Assembly (NCBI GenBank): GCA_024137785.1
Contig: JAHRHZ010000092.1
Span: forward strand, 874,029-935,451
Reading direction: 5' to 3'
Source of the DNA: Ginglymostoma cirratum
Lineage: Eukaryota
Length of the DNA stretch: 61,423 nt
Position numbers and translations under genes: made by a program. The notes under the pieces are model-generated. The model searched no databases, was not told the origin of the DNA, and saw nothing but the letters and a program-made list of their open reading frames with translations. Below are positions 713 through 54,403 of the stretch, piece after piece (the stretch's first letter is position 1; each line of letters opens with the position of its first letter).

Positions 713-751
713 GGTTTTTGTCGCGGTGATGTGCTGTTCTAAGACGCTGTG
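713..751 (-). other. 23-RSS (CACAGCG-23bp-ACAAAAACC)
   Basis: + strand GGTTTTTGT at 713-721, 23-nt spacer 722-744, CGCTGTG at 745-751. Confidence 0.95.
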
Positions 752-1311
752 CACAGCATGGTAGCACGCGTGGTTTCATTCTGGTAACAATTCAGTTCGA
801 CGGTTCCCTCTTCCTCGACAACGAGAGTAAATGGCCACTGATGCACCACATCGCCAGTGGAAGCACCTGCAAACATTTTTGGAAGCATTAATAAATAAAG
901 GTGAGACGTGGTAAGCGCTGAAGCTGCGTTTGAAAATAGGTGTTCTATAAAATAATGAATGATTGAATTAACCCCATTCTGCTCTATGGCCCAACAGATC
1001 TACAAATGTTCTGCCGATTTTAAGTGCCAGCTTATGTTTTGACATTCGTTTTTTGATTTGCTCCCACGACCCTTTCAGACGGCGCATTTCGGATCACAAC
1101 AAAAAGGTGCATTAAATAAAATTCGCCCCCAGTTCATTGGCAAAATATCTGTGACATACCGTTACGTTGATCCCCTATATTTCATTTTAATAATGAAAAT
1201 TTAATGATATTCATGGACCAAGCGCACAATTAAACCTGAGGCTTTCAGTAAATCTTTTTGCTTACATGGCAGCAGAAAGACAAGAGAGAGGGCGAGAGAA
1301 TCTAAAAGCAT
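752..1311 (-). pseudogene. TRBV: TCR beta V pseudogene with internal deletion (V0): leader 1311-1266, intron 1265-867, truncated V exon 866-752
   Basis: Kozak CCACCATG; leader MLLDSLALSLVFLLP with GTAAGC donor (phase 1); tttgcag acceptor; exon CASTGDVVHQWPFTLVVEEEGTVELNCYQNETTRATML-TG, then directly the RSS; FR2-FR3 absent. Confidence 0.9.
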
Positions 1312-10017: not shown

Positions 10018-11498
10018 ATCCTTCCATTAGACCTAAAGACAAATGAAGCAATATCCTGGAATCTTATTGCACAGAATAAGCATAGTTCGAAAACCTCACT
10101 GGTTAATGCAGACGTGTGCGGACATTTAACCAACCTTGCTTTCATCATCTATTAATAAGCAATTGAATAATAATTTTAGTGAATCAATTAAATGGACAGT
10201 TAGAAAAGAGACTGTAGTGACCGTCAAGTCTGTTGACTGAATATTATGCGGGGAACAAAGATTGCTTGTTTAGTCCAAGTGGTTCCAGCATATCCACGCT
10301 GATATTATTTGTAAAAATTATTAAAAAGATGCTCAGCCCTTCATCCTCAGTGATTCGACCTTATTCTAGATCTCCCAGACAGGGGAAGATAATCTCTTCG
10401 TCTTTCCAATCAAGTTTCTTCAGAAACACTGAATGGAATATCCTCTGACAAACACCAGAGGTACCTCTCGGTTGCACACAGTAATCATATGGTGCATTCT
10501 CACCAAAGCCCTGCAGAAAGTGTTTATTATTTTTCTCCTTTCTAGTAAAGGCCAATGTTCTATTTGCCTTCTGAATTGTTTGTTATAACCTGCACACTAA
10601 TTTTCTATATTCCTTCAACTCTCAAATTCATCTGAGCATAAACATTTAGCAGTTTCAGGCCTTTAAAAAGAACTTACATTTTTTGTACTTACAACTCAAG
10701 TAAATAATCTCACATTTTCCAATATTTTGCCTCATTATCCAATTTATTGGCAACTAACTTAAAGCGTTTATATCTGCAGCTTCCCTTAGTCATCCACATA
10801 TGTTAATTCTCTGATATATACAAGGTGTTGAGCTGGATGAACACAGCAGGCCAAGCAGCATCAGGGGAGCAGGAAGGCTGACGTTTCGGGCCTAGACATT
10901 TCCGAAGAAGGGTCTAGGCCCGNNNNNNNNNNNNNNNNNNNNNNNNNNNNNNNNNNNNNNNNNNNNNNNNNNNNNNNNNNNNNNNNNNNNNNNNNNNNNN
11001 NNNNNNNNNNNNNNNNNNNNNNNNNNNNNNNNNNNNNNNNNNNNNNNNNNNNNNNNNNNNNNNNNNNNNNNNNNNNNNNNNNNNNNNNNNNNNNNNNNNN
11101 NNNNNNNNNNNNNNNNNNNNNNNNNNNNNNNNNNNNNNNNNNNNNNNNNNNNNNNNNNNNNNNNNNNNNNNNNNNNNNNNNNNNNNNNNNNNNNNNNNNN
11201 NNNNNNNNNNNNNNNNNNNNNNNNNNNNNNNNNNNNNNNNNNNNNNNNNNNNNNNNNNNNNNNNNNNNNNNNNNNNNNNNNNNNNNNNNNNNNNNNNNNN
11301 NNNNNNNNNNNNNNNNNNNNNNGTACATCTCAGATTCTCCAGCATCTGCAGTTCCTACTATCTCAGAAACTATGTTAATTCTCTTCTGACTTTGCATCGT
11401 CAGTTAAATTTCATACATTCTCTCAGTCCTAGTCATGAATATAATCGTCTACGGTGTACTTACAGGGCAGAAAAAGTCGAAAAATAAAAGTGATGCAT
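10018..11498 (-). pseudogene. TRBV: Truncated paralog of the 14.5-15.7 kb V gene (leader 11498-11464; only first codons of V exon remain at ~10018-10032)
   Basis: 10018-10110 aligns with 14817-14927; 35-nt frameshifted leader ending gtaagt; same intronic CR1 piece; same CCGGAAATGAC promoter motif at 11602. Confidence 0.75.
10923..11322. other. Assembly gap (400 N) inside an inverted Penelope-terminal insertion
   Basis: N run; flanks are PLE terminal sequence; tatgttaattctct duplicated at ~10800 and ~11371. Confidence 0.95.
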
Positions 11499-17380: not shown

Positions 17381-19468
17381 AGAGATAATAGGTATTGCAG
17401 ATGCTGGAGAATCCGAGATAACAAGGTGTGGAGCTGGATGAACACAGCAGGCCAAGCAGCATCTTAGGAGCAGGAATGCTTGACGTTTCGGGCCTAGACC
17501 CTTCATCAGAAATGGGGGAGGGGAAGAGGGTTCTGAAATAAATAGGGAGAGAGGGGAAGGTGGATAGAAGATGGATAGAGGAGAGGATAGGTGGAGAGGA
17601 GGCAGACAAGTCAAAGAGGCAGGGATGGAGCCAGTAAAGGTGAGTGTAGGTGGGGAGGTAGGGAGGCGACAGGTCAGTCCAGGGAGGACGGACAGGTCAA
17701 GGGGGCGGGATGAGGTTAGTAGATAGGAGATGGGGGTGTGGCTTGAGGTGGGAGGAGGGGTAGGTGAGAGGAAGAACAGGTTAGGGAGGCGGGGATGAGC
17801 TGGGCTGGTTTTGGGATGTGGTTGGGGGAGGGGAGATTTTGAAGCTTGTGAAATCCACATTGATACCATTAGGCTGCAGGGTTCCCAGGCTGAATATGAT
17901 TTGCTACATCTGATATGTAACCTACAAAGTACGGAAGAGGGATTGTTCCACGTAACCTACAAAGTACGGAAGAGGGAGGTTACGTGGAACCACCTCTTCC
18001 TCCTCATTGATGACTGTATCGGCGCCACCTCATGCTCCCACGAGGAGCTCGAACAGTTCATCCACTTCACCAACACCTTCCACCCCAACCTGAAGTTCAC
18101 CTGGACTATCTCTAATACCTCTCTTCCTTCCTGGACCTCTCTGTCTCCATCTTGGGTAACCACCTAGAAACCGATATCCATTTCAAGCCCACTGACTCCC
18201 ACAGCTACCTAGAATACACCTCCTCCCACCCACCTTCCTGCAAAAATGCCATCCCCTATTCCCAATTCCTTCGCCTCTGCCACATCTGCTCCCAGGATGA
18301 GGCATTTCACTCCCGTAGATCTCAGATGTCCTCATTCTTCAAGGACCGCAATTTTCCCCCCACAATGGTCGAGAACACCCTCAACCGTGTCTCCCGCATT
18401 TCCTGCAACTCATCCCTCACACCCCGTCACCCCAATAACAACCAAAAAAGAATCCCCCTCGTCCTCATGTACCACCCCACCAACCTCCAGATCCAACGCA
18501 TCATCCTCCGACACTTCCGCCATCTTCAATCTGACCCCACCACCAAAGACATTTTTCCCTCCCCACCCTTGTCTGTTTTCCGGAGGGACCACTCTCTCCA
18601 TGACTCCCTTGTCCGATCCACACTCCCCTCCAGCCCCACCACACGCGGCACTTTTCCCTGCAAATGCAGGAAGTGCTACACCTGTCCCCACACTTCCTCC
18701 CTCACCCCAATCCCAGGCCTCAAGAAGACTTTCCACATCAAGCAGATGTTCACCTGCACATCTGCCAATGTGGTATACTGCATCCGCTGTACCCGTTGTG
18801 GCCTCCTCTACAGCGGGGAAACCAAGCAGAGGCTTAGGGACCACTTTGCAGAACACCTGTGCTCAGTCCGCAACAAACAACTGCACCTCCCAGTCGCAAA
18901 CCATTTCAACTCCCCCTCCCATTCCTCAGACAACATGTCAATCCTAGGCGTCCTGCAATGCCACAATGATGCCACCCGAAGGCTGCAAGAACAGCAAATC
19001 ATATTCAGCCTGGGAACCCTGCAGCCCAATGGTATCAATGTGGATTTCAGAAGCTTCAAAATCTCCCCTCCCCCAACCGCATCCCAAAACCAGCCCAGCT
19101 CATCCCCGCCTCCCTAACTTGTTCTTCCTCTCACCTATCCCCTCCTCCCACCTCAAGCCACACCTCCATCTCCTATCTACTAACCTCATCCCGCCCCCTT
19201 GACCTGTCCATCCTCCCTGGACTGACCTATCTCCTCCCTAACTCCCCACCTACACTCACCTTTACTGGCTCCATCCCCGCCTCTTTGACTGCCTCCTCAC
19301 CACCTATCCTCTCCTCTGTCCATCTTCTATCCGCCTCCCCCTCTCTCCCTATTTATTTCAGAACCCTCTTCCCCTCCCCCATTTCTGATGAAGGGTCCAG
19401 GCCCGAAACGTCAAGCTTTCCTGCTCCTAAGATGCTGCTTGGCCTGCTGTGTTCATCCAGCCCCACAC
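17381..19468 (+). mobile_element. Penelope-like element (RT C-terminus + GIY-YIG endonuclease) with inverted ~520-bp terminal copy
   Basis: ORF 18152-19117 with NVVYCIRCTRCGLLYSGETKQRLRDHFAEH; 17381-17903 is reverse complement of ~19000-19468. Confidence 0.9.
19385..19412 (+). ncRNA. Minimal hammerhead ribozyme core in PLE terminus (copies at 17482-17509 -, 53378-53405 -, 55700-55727 +, others)
   Basis: CTGATGA-AGGGTCCAGGCCC-GAAACGTC: CUGANGA and GAAA boxes, stem II, GUC cleavage triplet. Confidence 0.7.
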
Positions 19469-24949: not shown

Positions 24950-27900
24950 ATCTACCAACCCCTCCATTCCTCTCATGTCCCTTCCCATCGTGAGTTTATA
25001 ATGAGTGTAGCCTGTTTAAGAACCTCAGTACATTAACGCATAGGGCAGAACAACCTGCCAAGTTGTCTTGTGCTGCTGCACCATTTTGGCTATCATGTTT
25101 TTCAATGTCCGATTCATCCTTTCCACAACTCCACTCGACTGTGGTCTCTACAGTACGTGGAATCTGTCTGATCCCAAAATGGGTCATTACATTTTGCATT
25201 ACTTGGGTCGTAAAATGTGTTCTGATTCTATGCTTCAGGGTGTACCCTAATGGGTGAACACCTTTACTGACAGAATTTTTGTGGTAACTCTGGCTGTGTT
25301 TGTCTTCATTGGAAAAGCTTCCACCCATTTAGTAAAAGTATCCACCATTACCAAAATGCATTTGTATCCTCCTAGAATTGGAGGTAGAGGTCCTATATAG
25401 TCAATATATAAATTAATCTATGGCCCTTCTACTGGTATAGTATGTCAGAGGGCCCCCCTCTTAACGCTCCTAATGGGATTATGCTGTGCACAAATCAAAC
25501 AGCTCATCACAGAGTGTTCCCCCTCACCTTTCATTCCAGGCCACCGGCAAACTTCTATTAACTTATCCAGGGTATCCTCTGCCCCTTTATGCCCCCATAA
25601 GTCATGGAATTATTTGATTTCATCCCCTCTCAAGCACCACAAATTTTCCTTCATATTAAACTACTTTGTTCTCGAAATAGATCCCCTTGTGTGCTATACA
25701 TGTGTCTGATTCTGCTCTTTCTGTTAGTATTTTTTTTCAATTCCCTGTCTTTCTTTTACTCCTCTGCTAAATCTGTTACCTCGACCTGTTTCTCCTTCTG
25801 GCCCCCAATTTCTTCAAGTGGTGGCCACCATTCCTGGCCTTTCACGGCACCTTGTTTGGCTAACTCATCAGACTCCCTGTTCCCCCTGAGAGATAATTTT
25901 GAGTCAGGGTTTACTTTCATGACCCATATCCTTTCCTTTGTGCTTCTTCGAAGCTGTATTTTGACAGTGGAACCGAAGGAAGGGGGTTTCCATCCGCTGA
26001 GCCAAATCCTCTCACCTTCCACAGGGGCAAATATTCCGTGAGGCTATTACATGCTGTCAGAGTATATAACAGATCCAGGCAGAAAGCGTTCTGGGTGGTC
26101 ACCCACATCTGCGATGGCTGCAAACTCTACTGGTTCTAGGTAACTTTATCTTTCCTGTCTGTTCCCATCCTCCACATATATCCTGCACCCAGTTTTCCTT
26201 TCTCCTTCCTGTGCTGACGAAAAGCCATCCAGAAAAATTTTGAAATAAGGTTCTTCCTTTCCTTTTTCCTTTGCCTCCCTGATTTCGGGGCCCACCTTAT
26301 TTCCCACCCCTCCATTTGTTTGAATACAAATTGGTCTGGGGACCATTTGCTGTCATCAATTGACATTCACGTTTTTCTCGTTGAGCTGGCTTGTTCTCGT
26401 TCAGACATTTCGTCACCATGTTAGGTGACATCATCAATGGAGCCTTCGATGATGCGAAGTTATTCTATTCCACTTGGAATTTAAAATAATATTTTAAATT
26501 TAAAATAAAATTCCAAGTGGAGTAGAATAATGTCACTTCATTGGAGGCGCCACTGATGATGTCACGTAGCATGGTGATGAAACATCTGAATAAGAAAAAG
26601 CCAGCTTGGTGAGCAAGTCAACAACCTCACCCACAACCGAGCTACAGATCTTTGCCAAAACTTTATTCATGTTTTTCCCCGATACACTAAGTTGTCTGCT
26701 AACATGATGGTGGCTTTTACTCCTTTTATAGTGATATCCCTTCCCTGTAAAAACAGTGTCCATCTAGTGATTCTATTTTGGCTCACTGAACCATCTTTAA
26801 TCCTTCTGCCTAGTCGTAGCTGTATGGGGATATGTTCTGTTAGTATTGTAAGTGGGTTCAGCCCCACTATGTAGGTAAAATGCTGCACTGTGTAGAAAAC
26901 GGCTAGCAGATGTTTATCACATACCATGTACCCCTGCTCTACTGGTGAAAGCATGCGTGAGGCGTATGCTATTGGTCTTAATTTCCCGTGCGTCTCCTGT
27001 AACAGAACTGCCGAGCAAGTTGAGTCTGTGGTGGCTACTTCCAATGAAAATGGTTCATTTGGATTTGGGGTTTTCAGAGTGGGCGCAGGAGCCAGTGCTT
27101 GCTTCAGAGCTGCAATGGCCTGTGTGTGTTCCAGTTTCCACTCCCAGGCCACATGCTTTTTTAATAACTCCGCCAACTGAGATGGGTTTTATAGTGAATC
27201 CATCAATGTGGTCCCTGCAATACCCCAGTAAGCCCAGGAAGGATCTTAACCCTTTAACGTCCTGCAAAACAGGAAGTCTGTAGACTGCCTCTACCCTTCA
27301 TTTGTCAAGTTTTCTTTTCCGTGGTGATAAAATCATTCCCACGTAAGTAACTTTCTGCCTCATTACCAGCGCTTTCTTAGGATTTATCTTCAGACACAAC
27401 TCATGCAACAGCTGCAGCAACTCAACTAGCAGCTGATAATGTTCCTCTTTAGTTTCAGTTAGTAGAAACAAGTCATCTACATATTGTGCCAGACACTCAG
27501 GTTTCAAGAACCCTTGAACCCTTCTCTTAGATGTTGGCGAAATATGGACGGGGAATTATGAAATCCCTATGGCAGGGCGGTTCACCTACATTGCTGGCCC
27601 CAGAAAGTAAACATGAATGTATATTGGTACACTTTCTCCAGTGGGATTGACCAAAACCCATTACTTATTTCCAAAACCCATGAACCATTATGCATTCTGA
27701 TTTTGTTTGACTACTGTTTCTGGGCTAGTTGCTAAAGTGGGGGCTGTTAACGGGATGGCCTTGTTCAGTGTTCTCTAATCTATCCTCAGTCGCTAGCTAC
27801 AGTCCGGCTTCCTCACCGGCAAAATGGGAGAATTGTTAGTGAAAGCTACTGGTCTCATTATTCCTTGTTGCAACAAACTCCGTACTATCTTCCCTACCTC

Positions 27901-53837: not shown

Positions 53838-53876
53838 GGTTTTTGTTGAGCTGGTCCCTCTCTCGGTGTCACTGTG
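53838..53876 (-). other. Consensus 23-RSS (CACAGTG-23bp-ACAAAAACC)
   Basis: + GGTTTTTGT 53838-53846, spacer 53847-53869, CACTGTG 53870-53876. Confidence 0.97.
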
Positions 53877-54403
53877 TTACTCCAGGCGCAGTAATACGTG
53901 GCTGAGTGATCCGCTTGGAGGCTGGAAGTGTGCAGGTAGAACTCAGAGTCACTCGGCCGCTTGGCAGTGAAACCGTCCACAGGCTGGTCTGGATTGGTGT
54001 GATCTGTGCCTGTAGAGTAAAACATAAATTGTGGCCCCTTCCTGGGGTCTTCCCTGTACCAGTACATGTTAGGGTTACTAGTGCCCTGTACTGTGCATTT
54101 CAGTTCCAGTTCATCCTCGGGAGAGCGGGAGACAACAGCGGGAGTCTGATGGATAGTCTGCGAGTCTGCATCTGGAAAAGAGCGGAAAAACGGGTTGGGG
54201 GGCGCGGGGGAGTGGTACGATGGTTAGTAAATTGGATTTTCGGGGAAATGACAGAAAGAGAGACTGTAAAGACATGGAAAGAGAAGACATATAGAAATAT
54301 ATTGAAAAGAAGAAAAATGAAAAACAAGATTATAATTAAGATTTATTTTTTTAAGAATTCACTTACAATAAAACGAGATTATCAATCCCAGGAATAGATA
54401 CAT
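53877..54403 (-). CDS. TRBV: TCR beta variable segment, intact, TRBV30-like (V3): leader 54403-54367, intron 54366-54172, V exon 54171-53877
   Basis: MYLFLGLIISFY|gtaagt + YADSQTIHQTPAVVSRSPEDELELKCTVQGTSNPNMYWYREDPRKGPQFMFYSTGTDHTNPDQPVDGFTAKRPSDSEFYLHTSSLQADHSATYYCAWS; perfect RSS. Confidence 0.95.

Follow-up and report, generated by a model that had tools for sequence, protein, structure and literature searches.

The window, by which we mean the whole stretch of 61,423 nt of Ginglymostoma cirratum DNA that was analysed, carries an intact V-beta gene on its minus strand at 53838-54403 and, near its beginning, the remnant of another V segment, which is referred to here as V0. The intact gene (54403..53877) has a leader (MYLFLGLIISFY..) followed by an intron, and its V exon reads ..NMYWYREDPRKGPQFMFYS..ATYYCAWS. 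The end of this exon is normal, with ..TGC GCC TGG AGT AA running directly into CACAGTG and then, after 23 nt, into ACAAAAACC. The gene belongs to a different family from V0 and carries the only other perfect RSS in the window; further RSS-like matches and GTGCAC sites were set aside as being weak or within transposon debris. Debris of this kind lies between the two V genes, at 18152-19117 and 26667-27176. One of its ORFs gives a weak GIY-YIG match (E 0.002, under the Pfam cut-off) and is possibly Penelope-like; in another, the RT RNase H domains of an LTR-type element are clear (E 8.5e-25). Positions 10923-11322 are filled by 400 N, either an assembly gap or a mask.

V0 is read on the minus strand. 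Its exon, at 866..752, opens at a splice acceptor (...tttgcag/GT at 867/866) that follows a polypyrimidine-poor tract (the two together being 867..880, aaaaatgtttgcag), and it keeps a clean reading frame through FR1 and CDR1, translating as (G)ASTGDVVHQWPFTLVVEEEGTVELNCYQNETTRATML and then TG. Cys23 is present (LNC), and the last bases of the exon are ATG CTG TG, the final two of which are the first two bases of the Trp41 codon. Directly after them, with 0 extra bases, stands CACAGCG-23-ACAAAAACC at 751..713, which is composed of the heptamer CACAGCG (745..751), a spacer counted at 23 nt (TCTTAGAACAGCACATCACCGCG, 722..744) and a nonamer of perfect consensus (ACAAAAACC, 713..721). An intact leader exon could not be defined upstream of the V exon. 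A lone leader-like start, ATG GGG TTA..., was found at 945..977 and encodes MGLIQSFIIL; its ATG (977..975) meets a TAG after 10 codons, and no usable splice donor comes after it. An alternative leader frame ending at the GT of 972-971 was rejected because its peptide is non-hydrophobic.

To place V0 in a family, the 37-residue remnant was used as the query in a profile-free search of 1.84 billion representative proteins. Two true relatives were recovered, P0001 (GCC33706.1, Chiloscyllium punctatum) and P0003 (XP_067835378.1, Heptranchias perlo), while P0002 and P0004 from the same search were set aside as spurious, being repeat proteins of bacteria. The remnant is identical to residues 107-143 of P0001 at 29/37 positions, and aligns to residues 20-52 of P0003. 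P0001, which is annotated as a hypothetical protein, is a gene-model artefact in which a partial V exon, intron sequence, a second V exon and a translated RSS (..AQRLIIAHRHDKNFQ) are contained in one ORF, and this makes the V end readable at the protein level. Translated from base 752 in the frame of P0001, the RSS of V0 (AQRLRTAHHRDKN) aligns to P0001 residues 209-221 (AQRLIIAHRHDKN), and the read-through of its nonamer (..DKN..) agrees with the P0001 tail. Since the spacer translation resembles the P0001 read-through, the RSS at 713-751 is the V0 family's own signal and not a foreign one. P0003 joins the V family of V0 to a C-terminal half that matches TCR beta chains (E about 1e-34), and the TCR beta identity proposed for V0 in the first-pass annotation therefore stands.

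V0 thus has the two marks of a TCR beta V segment, namely a V family used with a TCR-beta constant region and a 23-RSS. Of the elements of an intact segment (leader, Cys23, Trp41 and Cys104), Cys23 is kept, the exon stops inside the Trp41 codon, Cys104 is lost and the leader-like ORF contains the TAG. V0 is a relic, a dead TCR-beta V gene segment, and is not functional. A homologous-protein search with the stop-free reference 742-999, its region set on the V part, gave no candidate, and one with P0001 residues 100-223 recovered P0001 itself alone. A metagenome scan with P0001 returned one locus at 33% identity, a bacterial-looking ORF and not a V gene, which was discarded.

The joint between exon and RSS, at 751/752, is a 12-nt palindrome, GCTGTG/CACAGC, with reverse-complement arms of 6 nt each. 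On the plus strand, positions 745-758 read CGCTGTG/CACAGCA and include an ApaLI-type site, GTGCAC, at 749-754; on scanning the window, this was the sole GTGCAC site with arms longer than 4 nt. The right arm is the heptamer of the 23-RSS. The left arm is TGCTGTG on the coding strand (from ..A TG CTG TG), which is a putative cryptic heptamer, CACAGCA, at 752..758 of the plus strand. The first-pass annotation had described an exon open to ATG CTG TG that abuts the RSS with no extra bases, an inverted heptamer at its end and a head-to-head fusion containing GTGCAC, and all of this was recovered when the sequence was read again. It had also cautioned that the cryptic heptamer has no good nonamer at 12 bp, and we agree, since no nonamer was found for it: matches are 0-1/9 at spacers of 11-13 and 2-3/9 at spacers of 22-24, against a random median of 4. 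As in a signal joint, the CAC ends of two heptamers meet head to head and no coding DNA separates them, save that the G at 752 may be left over from the coding sequence, and the DNA between the two signals is absent, 65 codons of P0001 and P0003 being gone here. A signal joint also has a full RSS on both sides, one 12 and one 23. The V0 junction has a perfect 23-RSS on the right and a heptamer-only site on the left, and it is therefore at best a cryptic-site joint.

The presence of the junction in independent samples was examined in public sequencing runs. For the same species, the search gave seven good holders, drawn from three studies, and three weaker ones from a fourth study (organism A), together with weaker holders from a second species (organism B). 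Three contigs span 751/752: X1 (430-1023) and X7 (453-1132) show no difference from the window, and X3 (470-1788) differs from it by four SNPs and hence represents a second haplotype. These bridging contigs have at least 270 bases on either side of the junction, and none breaks there (among the loose ends listed). At position 817 (G>C) the base of X3 is common to organism B, so that the window carries the derived allele at this position. The junction was thus found in the assembly and in the contigs that three studies gave, representing at least two haplotypes and coming from runs whose tissue and library type are unrecorded and some of which may be RNA. This argues that it is neither an assembly slip nor private to one animal, and a germline origin is very likely. 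Very high-copy interspersed repeats occupy 300-470 and 1774-1974, where the summed contig depth is thousands to millions in all four runs and both species; the unique contigs all break at the edges of these repeats.

Organism B is a related species, 5-7% diverged. Its flanks are at single-copy depth and are 93-96% identical to the window over 1.8 kb (472-752, 755-970, 1236-1628 and 1905-2300), for which reason its contigs are taken to be the orthologous locus. One of them aligns from 472 to 752, which takes it through the heptamer and 1 base further, and then has 153 unmatched bases; in another, the alignment runs from 970 down to 755 and 73 unmatched bases follow. On the assumption that neighbouring k=31 contigs overlap by k-1 = 30, organism B has 194 bases more than the window at the junction. 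P0001 has 65 residues between its two aligned pieces, WYRQLPGKG...DSAVYYCAASDG, which amount to 195 nt, and V0 retains one or two of these bases. The 65 codons (WYRQ...YYCAASDG) are present in both the Chiloscyllium and the Heptranchias relatives where V0 has none. If the two retained bases of the Trp codon are subtracted from the 65 codons, the loss in V0 is about 194 nt; the loss of FR2-FR3 reported in the first-pass annotation is therefore upheld, and its size of ~180 bp is revised. On these comparisons the joined V0 form is the derived state. Neither the V0 exon nor the lost part has another copy in the window, so that reinsertion of the excised piece nearby was not seen. Organism B also leaves the window at 970/971, with 30 unmatched bases, which indicates that the leader region too differs between the species. 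Its contigs depart there and give almost no cover over 1104-1235, so that the species differ structurally at a second place, 970-1236, in the V0 leader/promoter region.

The breakpoints can be placed closely, with the V ends of the relatives read from protein models and the overhangs of organism B known by length and not by letters. The P0001 read-through (..S D G A Q R L..) corresponds to a V end of ..GAT GGN G followed by CACAGCG, and the V0 family therefore cannot end in ...TGTG before the heptamer. The first-pass annotation had pointed out that relatives ending in ...TGCTGTG or ...TGTG just before the heptamer would let microhomology explain the deletion; the family end, in this protein-level reading, is GGN G. 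The bases that it has in common with ..CTGTG are 1 nt (G), or 3 at most (GTG, if N = T). The alignment of organism B halts at 752, one base past the heptamer, which means that the preceding base is not T and that a single G is ambiguous. The V0 joint is precise to within 1 nt, and the G at 752 could be the last V coding base and not part of the Trp codon. The fusion that had been called precise is so in having no extra base, and otherwise within this shareable 1 nt. The other contig of organism B halts at 755, not 752, and organism B most probably differs at 754. This is the third base of the Leu codon and, on the other strand, the C that completes the CAC of the cryptic heptamer; the alignments would fit either a G gained in this lineage before the deletion or one lost in organism B.

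The junction itself, its occurrence in independent samples, its derived state and its use of the gene's own RSS are observations. To account for them, we lean, by somewhat more than an even balance, towards a germline deletion by RAG, in which the 23-RSS of V0 itself and a heptamer-only cryptic signal bounded the FR2-FR3 part that was lost (about 194 nt) and a signal joint was left on the chromosome. RAG would have paired the 23-RSS of V0 with the heptamer-only cryptic signal CACAGCA, provided on the opposite strand by the codons ..ATG CTG TGG. The cryptic and the real heptamer would have faced one another across the coding DNA, and with facing heptamers cleavage would leave both blunt signal ends on the chromosome and release the coding piece. 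Ligation of the signal ends with neither loss nor addition would then give the signal joint, and the coding part would depart as a small circle and be lost. It is the shape of the scar that suggests RAG as the author of the cuts, and these would have been made in germ cells or in the early embryo. The germline RAG reading concerns one event, to which the scar is the only witness.

Two features of the locus speak against a RAG deletion, in that no legal spacing gives the cryptic signal a nonamer and just about 194 bp separate the two sites. Heptamer-only sites are cut far less efficiently by RAG. In VH replacement, heptamer-only sites inside V genes pair with a V 23-RSS. With regard to distance, paired signals about 250 bp apart in cis have been found to support coupled cleavage in vitro, and the efficiency of recombination is sensitive to a short intersignal distance (PMC2673416). 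Pre-joined light-chain genes have been taken as evidence of RAG-like joining in the germ cells of the nurse shark, and this joining was dated as recent (PMC2193156); the subject is also covered in a review (PMC8355894). The germline joining of V0 to its own 23-RSS, as put forward in the first-pass annotation, is consequently retained in part: the derived deletion and the signal-joint geometry favour it, whereas the cryptic site without a nonamer, the apparent difference of organism B at 754 and the reading of RAG from the form of the scar weigh on the other side. The stronger statement made there, that RAG had killed a TCR gene, is not established. The TAG in the leader-like ORF is a second defect of V0, which may have arisen before or after the deletion. 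In its present form the remnant presumably cannot encode a V domain, and its perfect 23-RSS could still enter unproductive rearrangements.

The strongest competitor, which we nevertheless consider unlikely, supposes that a V pseudogene lost ~194 nt through an ordinary deletion in the germ line, produced by end joining or replication error at 1-3 nt of microhomology, with ends that resemble signals by coincidence. At least 1 nt (the G at 752) is common to both sides, and up to 3 (GTG) would be if the Gly codon is GGT. The TAG of the leader-like ORF is another defect of this gene, which makes neutral decay plausible, and the lack of a nonamer at the cryptic site, the short distance between the sites and the possibility that the related species is without the CAC are all in keeping with a deletion of this type. 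The frequency of the motifs bears on it in both directions. GTG occurs at 1.6e-2 per position in the window and is commoner within the V0 exon, at 6/113 positions or about 5%; GCTGTG is found at 4.3e-4 per position. A random deletion would end exactly at the coding/heptamer border at about 2 in 300 positions, and for plain deletion this breakpoint must coincide with the 6-nt match on the left. The joint probability for a random deletion is about 3e-4 if CAC alone is demanded and about 1e-6 to 1e-5 for the 6-nt palindrome, and a chance origin is unlikely even given tens of damaged V genes per genome. The V end of organism B matches at one base before the heptamer, which makes a long microhomology unlikely, and replication slippage requires direct repeats, whereas those at the junction are inverted.

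A different use of RAG would be a joint of the open-and-shut type, in which the true 23-RSS was cut alone or with a distant partner and the coding end was chewed back by ~194 nt and rejoined, the left flank being a coincidence. The signal end of V0 is intact to the base and the coding side has lost DNA, an asymmetry that is typical of RAG breaks. Such an event needs no cryptic signal, and it would fit both the absent nonamer and a possible non-C at 754 in organism B. Open-and-shut joints usually lose a few bases from the coding end, against ~194 nt here, and the 6-nt palindromic match, for which the local chance is roughly 1% or less, would be left unexplained. We regard this explanation as improbable.

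It is more improbable still that the joined form is a somatic rearrangement of lymphocytes, or an artefact of assembly or library, and not the germline state. The confirming runs are of unrecorded library type, some being guessed to be RNA, which leaves some room for this reading. Set against it, the three studies and the assembly show the joined form alone, in unbroken contigs with at least 270 bases on each side, and one of the bridging contigs is on a different haplotype. An event in a subset of T cells would not displace the intact allele in a consensus. The first-pass annotation had raised the possibility that the junction is absent from raw germline reads, as an assembly or somatic artefact would be; in independent public data the bridging contigs show it on at least two haplotypes. 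Loss mediated by a hairpin or cruciform was rejected, as a 6-bp stem with a 194-nt loop is unstable and slippage needs direct repeats.

If a RAG deletion at a cryptic site is the correct explanation, its meaning goes beyond one gene. Germline RAG activity in cartilaginous fish has so far been inferred from coding joints, that is, from pre-joined genes. A signal joint that is inherited and lies at a cryptic site would provide the reciprocal footprint, and would imply that the recombinase does harm to germline receptor genes as well, a cost of keeping a domesticated transposase. It is tempting to generalise, at a little less than even confidence, that the V(D)J recombinase may be an ongoing germline mutagen in sharks, which pre-joins genes and also cuts heptamer-only cryptic sites in V exons, so that inherited signal joints prune the V genes. 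Such scars should then recur, and they could be used to measure germline RAG activity across species. As the signature is a simple one, an RSS abutting an inverted CAC that is absent in a sister species, it can be counted genome-wide, and the rate and the targets of germline RAG thereby become testable.

Among known systems, V0 resembles the V(D)J signal joints that are retained on the chromosome after inversional joining or in signal-joint-retaining deletion substrates of the pJH200 type. As in these, the heptamers are head to head with no bases added or lost, a perfect 23-RSS stands on one side, the DNA between the facing heptamers has been lost and an ApaLI-type GTGCAC is formed. V0 differs from them in that the partner is a heptamer-only cryptic site in the same V exon, about 194 bp away, and in that the product would lie in the inherited genome of a species, as against a lymphocyte or a plasmid. 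In the literature covered, which takes in few of the subscription journals, no account of an inherited (germline-fixed) signal joint was found. Off-target RAG deletions at cryptic RSS in lymphoid cells (oncogenic, HPRT-type) are likewise interstitial deletions bounded by a CAC-containing cryptic site. They are somatic and usually keep a processed coding joint, whereas the V0 event would be inherited, with the signal joint kept. The embedded cryptic heptamer of VH replacement is similar to the left arm of the V0 junction in being heptamer-only, inverted and inside the V coding region, and in recombining with a V-gene 23-RSS. Its site is at the end of FR3 near Cys104 and pairs with the RSS of another V gene in B cells, while that of V0 is at the Trp41 codon and would have paired with the RSS of the same gene. 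Finally, the germline-joined Ig genes of cartilaginous fish (Lee, Fitch, Flajnik and Hsu 2000, PMC2193156) share with V0 the animal group and the inferred agent, a RAG-like activity in germ cells by which a rearrangement becomes fixed in the population. Those are coding joints of proper V, D and J signals and constitute usable genes, whereas V0 would represent their reciprocal, a signal joint made at a cryptic site in the TCR-beta locus, with the gene destroyed.
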